Sequence record: MT995927.1
Reading direction: 5' to 3' (one strand)
Length of the DNA stretch: 64,000 nucleotides
Of this stretch, positions 26,706 to 62,776 are shown piece after piece. The notes beneath the pieces are model-generated. The model made no database searches, had not been told where the DNA came from, and saw only the letters and a program-made list of their open reading frames with translations. Numbering within the stretch: the stretch's first letter is position 1; each line of letters begins with the position of its first letter. A program made the position numbers and the translations under genes.

Positions 26706-27775
26706 TGGAACAATATCTTAATTCAATTCGTTTAGTTAAAGAACACGGTGTGCATAAAGGTGACCGTACTGGTACTGGTACTCAGAGCATGTTTGGTCAA
26801 CAAGAACGTTATAGTTTACGTAACAACGTTCTACCCGTAGTAACTACTAAGAAAATTCATCTTCCATCTGTTATCCATGAATTGTTCTGGATGCTTTCTG
26901 GTGATACTCGTGTAGATTATTTAATTGAAAATGGCGTACGCATTTGGAATGAATGGGTTAAACCAAATACCGCGATGTATCGTGAGTTAAATCAAGAAGA
27001 GCTTGACTCAGCTATTCTAAAGAAAGTTGGTGGTCCATTTGCTCTTTATTTCCATTCTCTAGATGATGACGTAATCATTTATACTAGAGATGATTTCGAG
27101 GTGTCTTTAAATAATGATGAGAAAGTTAGCTTTTGGAATCAATATCCAACCATTAATATCGAAGCTACCCATGTAGTTGGTGTTAACGCCGACCGCTGGA
27201 AGTTAGTATCTACTCTAGATTTCGATGAAAGTGTGACACCAGAACTAATTAAATATGAATATGGTAAACGACTATATAAATTGCTATTTGGTGTTAAGCC
27301 TCTAAAACTCATCGGGGGTGATCTAGGTGCCGTTTACGGTAAGACATGGCGTGATCTCGAAGATACCCGTGTGATCCCAAAACACGAGTGGGCTGTTTAC
27401 GAGGCACGTGGCTTTGACTTCGTAGTTGATATTCCAGGTACTTACATGGAGAATGATCGGTGTGTTGTAACACGTCGTATTGATCAAATTCAAGACGTGA
27501 TTGATCAACTTAAGACAAACCCTGATTCCCGTCGAATCATCGTTTGTGCGTGGTCACCGCAACTCGTTGATGAACAGGCGCTCCCACCATGTCATAGCTT
27601 CTTTCAGTTCTGGACTCGTGAACTGACGCTAGAAGAACGGTATGACTGGGTCAAACTTAACGACACTGAAGCTCAACGTATTTTCCTTGAAGGTGCGCAA
27701 CCGGAAACTGATCACGCACTGTGGGATAAACTTGGTGTTCCTAAACGTGCATTGAGCTGCCAGCTCTACCAGCGT
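26705..27775 (+). CDS. thyA: thymidylate synthase, exon 1
   Basis: DRTGTGT, PVVTTKK, IWNEW, GDLGAVYG, DQIQ, SRRIIVCAW, ALPPCH (catalytic Cys), LSCQLYQR. Confidence 0.95.
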
Positions 27776-28865
27776 TAAATACTAGCGCCTTCTAGGAGCA
27801 ATCCTAGTCGAATAACCTATCTAAACGGGGAAACTCTCTATGAGACAATCCCGTGCTAAATTGACTACGGTCATAAATGCCTAACGACTATCGAAACCAC
27901 TCTGAGAAGAGGAAGGGAGTAGAGTAGGACCAAGTGGTCCGAAAAGGTAGGGGTCTCTTTTTAAGAGATCGTGATATAGTCTGTCCTGCATGGAGACATG
28001 CAGCGGTTTACTTAATGACTCCGCCAGATAAGGAGGGTGTTATTAATGACGTAGCTTATGTGTATTGCCTATTCACCAAAGAAGGAAAGGTATATGTCGG
28101 AAGTGCGCGAGATTTAGTTAAGCGCGTTCAACGACATTTCAGAGACCTTAGTAATTCCAAGCACCATAACTACCCATTACAACAAGAATACGATAACGGT
28201 GAAAGATTCTCGTTAAAGTACTATCGTTGTGAAAGTCGGGAATCAGCATTTACACTCGAACAGATGTGGATAACCAAGCATGAAGAAGAAGGTAACCTTC
28301 TTAATATTGGTAGACACTCCAAGGGTGGTGATAACTTAACCAGGCATAACCTCAAAGAACAAATCATCGAGAAGCGGAGTGATACAATACGTATCAGACT
28401 TGATGAGATTGGAGCCGAGGCTCGTCAGGAAAAGTATGGTCGACCAGGTGAGCAGAATGGGATGTATGGTCGTACTCACACAGAAGAAGTTAAGGTAGCT
28501 CTATCCGAGTTACACACGGGTAACACTTACCGTCTTGGCATTAAAGCTAGTGATGAGACAAGAGCCAGGATGTCGGAGATAGCTTCTCAGAGAACAGGCG
28601 AACGTAATCCATTCTACGGTAAAACACATTCCGAAGAAACCAGAAAAAAGTTGGCGGATAACAAACGCGGTATAAAGCCAACTAACTCAAACAAACTTGA
28701 AGTGGACGGTGTTGTTTATTTATCCCAGGCCGATGCAGCTAAGGCTCTCGGAGTATCACAGGGTACAATAACATACCGAATTAACAGCAAGAATCCAAAG
28801 TATTCTGGTTATAAAGTCATTTAAGTAAACGGCTCAGGATTAACGACCCTGGGTGAACATAAGAG
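27776..28865 (+). mobile_element. group I intron (IA2, T4 td-like), 1090 nt
   Basis: Exon ends in U, intron ends in G; P1 GCGU|UA pairs with UAGCGC; td-like core CTATCTAAACGGGGAA..GACAATCCCGTGCTAAAT, AATGCCTAACGACTATC, GATATAGTCTG..CTGCATGG.GACATGCAGC, GATTAACGACC..TGAACATAAG; splicing restores YQR/SVDTFLG. Confidence 0.95.
28015..28824 (+). CDS. intron-encoded GIY-YIG homing endonuclease (I-TevI/I-BmoI-like)
   Basis: YVY..KVYVGSA.D..KR..RH, catalytic E and N positions, two NUMOD3 repeats (GMYGRTHTEE, PFYGKTHSEE), C-terminal HTH; start codon uncertain. Confidence 0.9.
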   Translation: MTPPDKEGVINDVAYVYCLFTKEGKVYVGSARDLVKRVQRHFRDLSNSKHHNYPLQQEYDNGERFSLKYYRCESRESAFTLEQMWITKHEEEGNLLNIGRHSKGGDNLTRHNLKEQIIEKRSDTIRIRLDEIGAEARQEKYGRPGEQNGMYGRTHTEEVKVALSELHTGNTYRLGIKASDETRARMSEIASQRTGERNPFYGKTHSEETRKKLADNKRGIKPTNSNKLEVDGVVYLSQADAAKALGVSQGTITYRINSKNPKYSGYKVI

Positions 28866-57548: not shown

Positions 57549-58202
57549 ATGGCGTCAATCATTAGTCTACCTTTTATCAAACTAGTAATCAGCCGTAATA
57601 ATAATTACACTGTTAACCATCAGTCAGGTGCTGATAATGTACCTCATCTATGTGTTAAAGTAAAACATTCTAACGGTTATGCCTGGTTCGGTATTATCAT
57701 TGTTGATTATGAAAAACGTACCAGTGGTTGGACTGAAGAAGAATTCAATGCAGTTGTAACTCGTTTCCATGAAGCAATGAATTCTCAATGTGATATCCAA
57801 CGATTAGAAACAGACATTAACCGACTAATGGATTCCATCCAAGATGTTGTTACTGGTCGGAAACGACCAACCCTATTCGGCGGTGATAGTAATGACTTCA
57901 TTCAAATGCATCTTCAAAATAATATCCAACTTGATATTTATCGGAATGAAATTAACGAAGATACTCTAACCTATGGTGGGTATCGTGGTAAAGTAAGTCT
58001 TCGCCATGGTTATGAAGAATATAACTTCTTCCTGTACCATCGTGGTATTATTTTAAATCATTACATCGATGCAGAAATCGCTAAAGAGCTAATTGAAGAC
58101 GCTCTTAATAGAACCTTCCCTGAGATCACTTATCTGCCACAAGCTATTGTTGAAACTACGGCAGTTGAGCGTACTCGCAATAGGCATACGGATAGAAACT
58201 GA
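57549..58202 (+). CDS. hypothetical protein
   Basis: 217 aa, AAGGA SD. Confidence 0.8.
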   Translation: MASIISLPFIKLVISRNNNYTVNHQSGADNVPHLCVKVKHSNGYAWFGIIIVDYEKRTSGWTEEEFNAVVTRFHEAMNSQCDIQRLETDINRLMDSIQDVVTGRKRPTLFGGDSNDFIQMHLQNNIQLDIYRNEINEDTLTYGGYRGKVSLRHGYEEYNFFLYHRGIILNHYIDAEIAKELIEDALNRTFPEITYLPQAIVETTAVERTRNRHTDRN

Positions 58203-58759: not shown

Positions 58760-59146
58760 ATGTGCAAACAACACCGCGTCGTATCTATGAAAGTTACATG
58801 CACGCAAGCTCGTTATCCGATCGGTCTACGCGATCTCGGATTTGATAATGCTGCTGAAGCTCGGCAATATCTAATGGATGTCGTCGAATACAATATGGAT
58901 CGTCTCCACCCACAGGATGCTGATACATACCAGTTCCAGCTACAGGATCTGCATGATGGTTTTGTAGTTTCTTACGATATCGAACAAAATGGAAGTATTT
59001 GTTTACGATTAACACTAGCTGCTGTGGCATACCTAACAATCGAACTTGATTTGGGTGTTACTAACAAAGAATCTAAATATATTCCTGTTATAATCAAAAA
59101 GTGGATCAATGGTGATTATACTGAAGGAAATAAATACTTACAGTAA
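58760..59146 (+). CDS. hypothetical protein
   Basis: 128 aa, GAGGA SD. Confidence 0.8.
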   Translation: MCKQHRVVSMKVTCTQARYPIGLRDLGFDNAAEARQYLMDVVEYNMDRLHPQDADTYQFQLQDLHDGFVVSYDIEQNGSICLRLTLAAVAYLTIELDLGVTNKESKYIPVIIKKWINGDYTEGNKYLQ

Positions 59147-59151
59147 TACCA

Positions 59152-59272
59152 TATGTAAAGAATTCCCAAATCGGGATCTCCCGGACTATCTCCCTTCAGC
59201 GTTCCCGTCCGCATATGAAGGTGCCGCAGAGATCCCACCTATTATAATAAAGCTCTCCTTCGGGAGAGCTTT
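59152..59272 (+). ncRNA. candidate pseudoknotted small RNA (~120 nt)
   Basis: TATGTAAA start; closing stem 59173-80/59229-36; crossing stems 59182-86/59207-11 and 59193-98/59216-21; terminator 59249..59272. Confidence 0.6.
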
Positions 59273-59310
59273 ATTTCGTTTAGGGCTTTTATGTTATTTG
59301 AGGAGGATAA

Positions 59311-60045
59311 ATGACTTACATTGTTAATGATGGTAAAGTCATGATTGCTGATTGTCTATTAATTACACGTGATACTGCTACTGATGCACTTGGACGATTA
59401 CCAGTGTTAGACAATAAGTATTTGGACCTTAATGCTAGCGCTAAAGGGGTTGATATTTATTATAATGATTGTCACAAAATCATATTTCACCCAACTGCTA
59501 CATGGCGGGGTAAAAGAATTAAAACACTCGCTTTTGCTGGAACCACAGATAATGTTTATGATTTACTGAATTCACTTACAGCTGGTGTTGATTTAAATGA
59601 CTGGTTTAAAGTTGAAGTAAATATCCTGCCAATTTCAGAACGCAGGATATTTAATGGTAAAACTTCAATGATGTATACCATGGAGGATGGCCGCATTTAT
59701 ACAGCTATTCTCAATAATGTTGATATTGACATTACTGAGAAAAAATGGGCACATTTAGGTAGTGGTGTGGATGCAGTGAATAGTGTAATTGATTTTATCC
59801 CTAATTGTAATAATAATGGGATAATTGAACTAACTGCACTAGAAGCATTTGCTATTGCTTGTGCACATACGCACACAGTAAGCCGTAAGTTTGATTATTT
59901 TATCCATGCTACTGGTGAGTATAAACAGAATCAAGAACTATCTACTAGACAACTTAAATGGATCTTAGCTCGTATTCAGAAACGTATGGATCTTACATGT
60001 ATCTACACTGATGTAAAATATGCTAATGATGTATGGAGTGAATAA
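59311..60045 (+). CDS. HslV/proteasome-beta-like Ntn hydrolase
   Basis: N-terminal M-Thr, MIADC, HKII, LAFAG, HLGSG..A, ALEAF.IA. Confidence 0.7.
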   Translation: MTYIVNDGKVMIADCLLITRDTATDALGRLPVLDNKYLDLNASAKGVDIYYNDCHKIIFHPTATWRGKRIKTLAFAGTTDNVYDLLNSLTAGVDLNDWFKVEVNILPISERRIFNGKTSMMYTMEDGRIYTAILNNVDIDITEKKWAHLGSGVDAVNSVIDFIPNCNNNGIIELTALEAFAIACAHTHTVSRKFDYFIHATGEYKQNQELSTRQLKWILARIQKRMDLTCIYTDVKYANDVWSE

Positions 60046-60047
60046 GC

Positions 60048-60557
60048 GTGAATATTTCTAAGATGGGTATGTTAGATTATTCTAGTAATACTTGGGATGA
60101 GTATTATAGTCATGTAAAACAACGTGCAGATGACACGGTTAAGATAATGTATAAACCGGAATATTCTGATCTTATAGACGATGCCTGTAGACCATTGATT
60201 AAATGGTTTAATCAGTTCTCCAATATTGCAACTGTTTATTGTTGTTCTGGTCATGTCGATGAACAGGATGGTGGAAGCTGCGGGTATATTAGTCTACTAT
60301 TTAAGGATACCGTTACAGAGTGCTCTGTGCTGCGTTTACTGCGAGAATCTATGTGTATAGGGCGTATTAGCAAGATTCCATTTGAAATTGAATTAGGTGC
60401 CTATTACGGACATTTACACGATACTATTGATCAAGATCAATGGGTGCCAAATTTAATTATTCGTACTAATAGTTATAAACGTAAATCTACGTATGATAGA
60501 TATTGGCATAAGCTGTACAACATTATTACTAGTTGTAATAAAGAGGGTTTACTGTAA
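60048..60557 (+). CDS. TYW3/Taw3-like phage protein
   Basis: IDDACRPLI..FN....TVYCCSGH. Confidence 0.6.
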   Translation: MNISKMGMLDYSSNTWDEYYSHVKQRADDTVKIMYKPEYSDLIDDACRPLIKWFNQFSNIATVYCCSGHVDEQDGGSCGYISLLFKDTVTECSVLRLLRESMCIGRISKIPFEIELGAYYGHLHDTIDQDQWVPNLIIRTNSYKRKSTYDRYWHKLYNIITSCNKEGLL

Positions 60558-62699: not shown

Positions 62700-62776
62700 T
62701 GGTGCCGCCACTCCGAATCGAACGGAGGACCTACGCATTACAAGTGCGTTGCTCTACCTAGCTGAGCTATAGCGGC
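62700..62776 (-). tRNA. trnT: tRNA-Thr(UGU) with encoded CCA
   Basis: Acceptor GCCGCUA/UGGCGGC-A-CCA, D-arm AGCUCAGCUAGGUAGAGC, anticodon loop CUUGUAA, T-loop GUUCGAUUC. Confidence 0.97.

Follow-up and report, generated by a model that had tools for sequence, protein, structure and literature searches.

Comparative evidence for a conserved, structured non-coding RNA in phiKZ-like giant Pseudomonas phages

The window (the whole 64-kb stretch of DNA analysed in this study) belongs to a phiKZ-like Pseudomonas jumbo phage. In the kilobase that was tested, it showed 100% identity with Pseudomonas phages T2P, U1B, U5 and phi9_PA9 and about 83% identity with phiKZ. An RNA element was located at 59173-59236 on the + strand, between the homologues of PHIKZ288 and PHIKZ289. 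The features of the locus are listed below.

58760..59146, + strand: homologue of PHIKZ288, the upstream neighbour, function unknown
59132..59155, + strand: putative promoter of the phage non-virion RNA polymerase, with an A-rich/TAC box at 59132-59139 and TATG at 59152-59155
59155..59172, + strand: 5' leader, 18 nt
59173..59236, + strand: core of the conserved RNA, in which four nested helices form an irregular hairpin
59173-59180 with 59229-59236, + strand: helix P1
59182-59184 with 59224-59226, + strand: helix P2
59185..59192, + strand: 5' side of the internal loop (an 8x2 asymmetric loop), ACUAUCUC
59193-59198 with 59216-59221, + strand: helix P3
59199-59201 with 59210-59212, + strand: helix P4
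59202..59209, + strand: apical loop, UUCCCGUC
59222..59223, + strand: 3' side of the internal loop, UG, of which G is invariant and U nearly so
59237..59243, + strand: single-stranded tail ACCUAUU directly 3' of P1, with the family pattern N-Y-C-U-A
59246..59277, + strand: intrinsic terminator of the phiKZ type, a hairpin with a UUCG-type loop followed by a U-rich tract
59311..60045, + strand: homologue of PHIKZ289, the downstream neighbour

The PHIKZ289 homologue (59311-60045) matched PHROG 1040, 'peptidase HslV family', with an E value of 2.8e-5. The protein starts with Met-Thr, which fits the expectation for an N-terminal-nucleophile hydrolase, and sequence searches of Pfam and PDB gave no match. 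It is probably a peptidase of the HslV family (N-terminal nucleophile). Upstream, the PHIKZ287 homologue (57549-58202, + strand) showed 96% amino-acid identity to phiKZ, compared with about 80% for its neighbours. It is present in every phage carrying the RNA; it is called an endolysin in the record of U5, and PHROGs gives its function as unknown. The PHIKZ290 homologue (60048-60557, + strand) had a weak Pfam match to TYW3, a tRNA-modifying methyltransferase, with an E value of 0.002 that is below the cut-off, and its homologues were seen only in Phikzvirus and PhiPA3. A link between the RNA and this protein was rejected because of that restricted distribution.

Across the window, Rfam reported only a tRNA-Thr and a group I intron. 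The catalytic intron lies at 27766-28003 on the + strand and was matched over its full length (RF00028, 69.4 bits, E 1.6e-15). The tRNA-Thr (UGU) lies at 62703-62776 on the - strand, has an encoded CCA end and was the sole find of ARAGORN in the window, which placed it at 62700-62776. It is preceded by a TATATG box and an 11-nt leader, in close likeness to the promoter and leader of the RNA studied here.

Public records matching the locus contain no RNA feature; most are blank at this position and a few call a hypothetical protein. A 72-codon ORF (59109-59327, + strand) overlaps the RNA and is recorded as a hypothetical protein in several Phikzvirus genomes, among them ANB1, PhiPizzaParty and KEN19, and Viktualia CDS0139 (L007:1508-1789) likewise overlaps it. 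The ORF at 59109-59327 is probably spurious, and the annotation can be corrected in this respect for the several records in which ORFs, also probably spurious, were called over this locus.

The initial annotation had placed the element between a TATG start and a terminator, and we found both in flanking position: TATG at 59152-59155, and a terminator hairpin with a T-tract at about 59246-59277. TATG with G as position +1 is the late-promoter motif of phiKZ, used by the non-virion polymerase (PMC4666361), and by this motif G59155 is likely the first transcribed base. The TATG or TATAG box, with an A-rich/TAC box about 15-25 nt further upstream, was found in 18 of 19 members, a count that covers all members with upstream sequence read. 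Leader length varies: most relatives have 11 nt, and 201phi2-1-like phages reach about 120 nt. Most members have a GAAC-like motif immediately 5' of P1. A leader-to-P1 hairpin, GAAC/GUUC, is possible in about six of 14 members, too few to call it conserved. In the window, the leader and the first bases of P1 (59164-59176) can form an alternative hairpin, UCCC...GGGA, which was flagged by the terminator scan on the minus strand.

The terminator fits the terminator motif of phiKZ (PMC10914365), and its stem contains compensatory differences between the window and phiKZ. The predicted transcript would run from G59155 to about 59277, with a length of about 120 nt. Short, abundant RNAs extending from promoter to terminator are a documented class in phiKZ, and many terminators of this phage are located in 5'-UTRs, with two modes of read-through (PMC10914365). 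Among the members, the distance from the terminator to the next start codon is 15-35 nt (about 33 nt in the window), so the same structure must also be the leader of any read-through mRNA. The gap in the window contains another TATG at 59283-59286, which is missing in phiKZ, and the PHIKZ289 homologue is therefore probably reached by read-through.

Homologues were collected in three steps. Searching phage genomes with tblastn, upstream of PHIKZ289 homologues, gave RVTF4, D6 and Psa21, and a pattern scan with the invariant motifs gave further jumbo-phage contigs (IMG/VR, metagenomes). A covariance model built from nine sequences then added PA1C, HPP-Temi, PhiPA3, Phabio, Viktualia, 201phi2-1 and five viral contigs, of which four provided new sequences and the fifth was 201phi2-1-like. 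Locus searches with the two flanking proteins used singly recovered close relatives only; tblastn together with an alignment-based search for the PHIKZ287 family reached more distant phages. The resulting 18 distinct homologues come from at least seven phage lineages, comprising Phikzvirus, PA1C-like phages, PhiPA3, Psa21/D6/RVTF4, Phabio, 201phi2-1/Viktualia and uncultured contigs.

In the pattern scans of viral, metagenome and genome collections, true members were located solely on jumbo-phage contigs. All 11 matches in bacterial genomes and most of those in metagenomes were without the fold and were taken as chance. One copy was found per genome stretch examined, always downstream of a PHIKZ287-family gene. 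A search for paralogues in the 64-kb window and 50 kb of phiKZ gave none; two weak matches (L046:11709-11784 and L064:1946-2017) were discarded as accidental. Both 201phi2-1 and Phabio retain the RNA, although tblastn detected no PHIKZ289 homologue in them, indicating that the RNA is more widely conserved than the downstream gene.

The G+C content of the element is 0.61 compared with 0.346 for the window, and only 0.02% of 64-nt windows are as high, which agrees with the GC-richness noticed at the start. An 81-nt stretch gave a folding z-score of -3.26, with one of 200 shuffles as good, and a 115-nt stretch that begins 7 nt upstream of P1 and includes the terminator gave -5.92, with none of 200 shuffles as good. 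The minimum-free-energy fold of the element in the window contains the same four nested helices as the comparative model and is unknotted.

This fold differs from the one drawn in the initial annotation, in which an 8-bp closing stem enclosed two crossing helices. The closing stem is present (GGGATCTC at 59173-59180 with GAGATCCC at 59229-59236) and is kept in the homologues as P1. Of the two enclosed helices, CCTTCA (59193-59198) with TGAAGG (59216-59221) is also present and is kept with compensatory changes as P3. The strings of the other one, CGGAC (59182-59186) and GTCCG (59207-59211), exist and cross P3 on paper, but their pairing is not conserved: the crossing helix was 67% paired with no compensatory changes, and two of its five pairs were broken in six to seven of nine sequences. 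The H-type pseudoknot is therefore not supported. In both the minimum-free-energy and the comparative folds, the bases of these two strings are used instead by nested pairings, CGG/CCG in P2 and GCG/CGC in P4. The junction of P3 and P4 is a bulge of variable size and side across the family.

Through RNAalifold on a plain MAFFT alignment of nine sequences, we obtained four nested helices with compensatory changes in 12 of 19 pairs; 96% of the cells were paired in this alignment, compared with about 40% when the partners were slid. The model-aligned set of 18 distinct sequences showed compensatory changes in 18 of 22 pairs and 94.6% of cells paired (36-46% when slid), but this alignment was made to the covariance model and is hence biased toward structure, so that the unfitted nine-sequence result is important. 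Comparison within Phikzvirus alone gave a near-invariant element, in which selection is visible and covariation is not. With relatives outside the genus included, covariation, which had been proposed as a check of the RNA, is abundant. The alignments thus show the nested fold, and not the pseudoknot, to be the supported structure.

Between the window and phiKZ, 62 of the 64 bases of the element are identical. The flanking genes are 79-82% identical overall and 62-70% identical at third codon positions, which indicates strong purifying selection on the element. PhiPA3 contains stop codons in all three + frames within the core, so a conserved peptide is excluded. Read as + strand, the family contains 12 G-U wobbles versus five A-C mismatches; together with the orientation of promoter and terminator, this excess identifies the + strand RNA as the functional form.

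Conservation of the unpaired parts was also high. On the long side of the internal loop, each of the 18 aligned members has AUCUC (59188-59192) without change, and CCCGUC of the apical loop (59204-59209) is invariant in the family and is retained even where P4 is reduced (L049). The unpaired motifs persist in this way while the identity of neighbouring proteins drops to 29-41%. The tail is less strict, with the variants ACU in PhiPA3, GUC in L049 and CCC in L050.

No Rfam 15 family reached the gathering threshold at the element, and a permissive search (E up to 10) of 59050-59350 returned terminator-driven noise only. The general proposal is supported: the RNA is structured, non-coding and so far undescribed, and it has a TATG-type start and a terminator to itself. 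Of the more specific suggestions, ribozyme, aptamer and decoy are possibilities. Considering the covariation, the selection and the distribution, these comparisons show the element to be a real, strongly conserved structured non-coding RNA of phiKZ-like giant Pseudomonas phages.

The family exists in a short and a long form. In the short form, represented by the window and phiKZ, the terminator follows shortly after the element. In the long form, found in PA1C, PhiPA3, 201phi2-1, Viktualia and several contigs, about 270-300 nt of additional non-coding sequence stand before the terminator, and the RNA is about 400-500 nt long with the element as its 5' domain. The Phikzvirus KEN49 has the long form at the identical site, with the same core as phiKZ. 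In this phage (vB_Pae3705-KEN49, L069:417-812), about 290 nt that are absent in phiKZ and the window lie between the tail and the terminator, and the extra segment is bordered by imperfect 10-nt direct repeats. The short forms could have lost this segment, or KEN49 could have gained it.

The intergenic RNA region of 201phi2-1 (L043:2925-3410), L007:1445-1930, L062, L064 and L065 is 450-500 nt long; on its 5' side the element has about 120 nt of additional sequence, and on its 3' side a domain of about 290 nt. Within this group the 3' domain shows clear homology, with conserved blocks, some covarying helices and a long-range helix, whereas its comparison with PA1C, PhiPA3 and KEN49 revealed short shared blocks only. 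Rfam (E up to 1) had no match to the long forms of Viktualia, PA1C and 201phi2-1. From this distribution of long and short forms, the 64-nt core is the universal module, and the 3' domain is dispensable or repeatedly gained and lost.

For the function of the RNA, we lean toward a trans-acting role, as a tentative preference that stops short of calling it probable: the short RNA released by termination would use its two invariant, pyrimidine-rich loops to bind a partner. Transcription of the + strand by the phage-encoded RNA polymerase would begin at G59155 of the TATG-type start and end in the intrinsic terminator near 59277, with a product of about 120 nt. The helices would merely position the AUCUC and CCCGUC loops, and these loops would contact the partner, which might be a G-rich RNA segment (ribosome-binding-site-like) or a dedicated protein. 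For polymerases that read through, the same structure would be the 5' leader of the HslV-like peptidase mRNA. Bacterial trans-acting small RNAs are usually built from a structured body, an A/U-rich linker and a terminator, and the order of the parts here matches this build. The persistence of the RNA in 201phi2-1 and Phabio, without a detected PHIKZ289 homologue, also argues against a role tied only to PHIKZ289. Several observations weaken the proposal of a trans-acting small RNA. With 15-35 nt to the start codon the element is a leader too, and a cis role fits equally; invariant loops on a rigidly conserved scaffold are seen more typically in catalytic RNAs, or in those that bind a protein or ligand, than in simple antisense RNAs; and the long forms separate element and terminator by about 290 nt. 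The loop motifs of 5-6 nt are too short for target prediction, and, of the complementarity to the ribosome-binding site downstream, no more than a generic purine-rich core is kept. A pairing of the loops with the ribosome-binding site, seen in the window and phiKZ and not in the relatives, was rejected.

A cis-acting leader that sets terminator read-through into the HslV-like peptidase operon is a possible, though somewhat doubtful, alternative. It would act by binding a protein or small ligand, as in riboswitch-like attenuation, or by processive antitermination on the phage polymerase, like put of HK022. All members share the order of promoter, structured element, terminator and gene; in the homologues the space from terminator to start codon is too small for a promoter, and the TATG in the gap of the window is not kept in phiKZ. 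The invariant loops on a covarying scaffold resemble an aptamer or a contact site for a protein or polymerase, and the many 5'-UTR terminators of phiKZ with their two read-through modes (PMC10914365) also suit a leader. The layout of an attenuating riboswitch, a conserved structured element directly 5' of a 5'-UTR terminator, is found in the short forms, and about 290 nt lie between the two parts in the long forms; this variable distance would suit a processive mechanism. By inspection of the short-form members, however, no conserved antiterminator pairing was found between the element and the highly variable terminator stems. One candidate, AUCUC with the 3' strand of the terminator, was rejected, being present in the window and phiKZ and not in relatives. 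The element also persists where the downstream gene differs, it is single-copy in each genome stretch, and transcripts from the upstream gene would contain it as well. We consider it rather unlikely that the element is the sensing or catalytic core of an unrecognised class of large structured RNAs of nucleus-forming jumbo phages. Such an RNA, about 400-500 nt long in 201phi2-1, Viktualia, PA1C, PhiPA3 and KEN49, would have been cut back to the 5' domain on repeated occasions, with the window and phiKZ as examples; its two invariant loops would dock on each other and create a pocket in which a metabolite, the phage RNA polymerase or some other phage-specific protein could bind. If true, this would mean a new class of riboswitch, ribozyme or ribonucleoprotein, and not an ordinary antisense RNA.

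Other functions are less probable than these. RNase III sites occur between genes of phage T7, and the helix of about 22 bp, equal to about two turns, with its internal loop and its intergenic position on a polycistronic + strand might suggest an RNA-processing or stability element, either a target of a host or phage ribonuclease (double-strand-specific or other) or a protective 5' hairpin of the downstream mRNA. This is quite unlikely: one copy in the 64-kb window and in 50 kb of phiKZ is not the pattern of a general processing signal, and such sites do not need strict loop invariance. A tRNA-like RNA had been suggested in the initial annotation, and in the form of an acceptor mimic, with P1 and P2 as acceptor/T stack, the leader removed by RNase P and the tail trimmed, it would decoy or recruit a tRNA-handling enzyme. 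The invariant G-C as the first pair of P1, a tail starting with purine-C-C in most members, the 11-14 bp of P1 and P2 in total, the promoter and leader like those of tRNA-Thr, and the location in a tRNA-rich part of the genome would fit such a mimic. It is nevertheless highly doubtful. The tRNA/tmRNA scan with ARAGORN gave nothing at the element, either in the window or in nine loci, and the Rfam tRNA model (E up to 10) was negative. The RNA is a plain unbranched hairpin, without cloverleaf or T-loop, and its stack length varies within 11-14 bp. The base after CC is always U where CCA would need A, and CC itself is replaced by CU in PhiPA3 and UC in L049, while the tail of L050 is CCC.

A self-cleaving ribozyme, HDV-like or of a new class, is very improbable. 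The apical region had been compared with loop L3 of the HDV ribozyme, and the element is compact, G+C-rich and phage-borne with invariant unpaired nucleotides. This likeness did not hold, as neither the HDV type nor any other Rfam ribozyme family matched 59050-59350 at E up to 10; the element lacks the double pseudoknot required of HDV-like ribozymes, and none of the known small self-cleaving folds resembles a simple rod interrupted by a single internal loop. Scarcely credible is a role other than RNA, as the 72-codon ORF at 59109-59327 or a site at the DNA level. In favour, the window has an ORF across the region, and several records of Phikzvirus annotate it; against this, relatives have stops in the corresponding frames (PhiPA3 in all three), the substitutions compensate pairs and are not codon-patterned, and the wobble pairs favour one strand.

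To our knowledge, the non-coding RNAs of phages are poorly charted, and for nucleus-forming jumbo phages we know of few candidates, none with known function. With its fold and loops kept across genera in which neighbouring proteins are just 30-50% identical, its single copy and its long and short forms, the RNA described here is among the best-supported structured RNA families of these phages, and it offers a concrete way into the study of regulation by RNA in phages whose transcription and translation take place apart.

The put RNAs of phage HK022 are two-hairpin RNAs of about 70 nt, present in two copies, which act on the host polymerase. The studied RNA is like them in being a promoter-proximal structured RNA with conserved unpaired bases upstream of a terminator in a phage operon; it differs in forming one rod-like hairpin and in the polymerase, which is phage-encoded here. 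In staphylococcal RNAs of the RNAIII type, C-rich loops pair with ribosome-binding sites. Pyrimidine-rich invariant loops on stable hairpins, followed by an intrinsic terminator, are shared with these small RNAs, whereas the scaffold studied here is far more rigidly conserved than in such antisense regulators. Compared with an HDV-like ribozyme or H-type pseudoknot, the element has a similar size and G+C richness, and in this one sequence two of its helices can be made to cross on paper, but the crossing helix is not conserved.

Among phage RNAs, the element groups with sRNA005 of 201phi2-1 and the RNA upstream of phiKZ gp182, to date the one small RNA reported to be conserved in jumbo phages (PMC11512511). 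That RNA is likewise a small 5'-UTR RNA conserved in phiKZ, 201phi2-1, PhiPA3 and other giant phages; unlike the studied RNA, it lies at another locus, upstream of a tail-protein gene, its sequence is unrelated, and no covariation statistics were given for it. Closer in layout are the short 5'-UTR-derived RNAs of phiKZ from ONT-cappable-seq, for example those upstream of PHIKZ221 and PHIKZ302 (Putzeys et al. 2024, PMC10914365). As in these RNAs, a phage promoter is followed by a short structured RNA and a terminator just before a gene, in the same genus and with the same terminator motif, and presumably short and read-through forms both exist. In the window, TATG lies at 59152-59155, the terminator ends at about 59277 (a distance below 250 nt), the gene starts at 59311 and no conserved ORF is present in between. 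The RNAs of Putzeys et al. were reported as conserved within the genus, whereas the studied RNA has a covarying fold over many genera and occurs in long and short forms; it may be one of their 17 phiKZ candidates. We found no description of it in Rfam or in the searchable literature. By its layout the element belongs with the terminator-bounded 5'-UTR RNAs of phiKZ, as a phage-encoded structured small or leader RNA; newly described here are its covariation across genera, its invariant loops and its long/short polymorphism.
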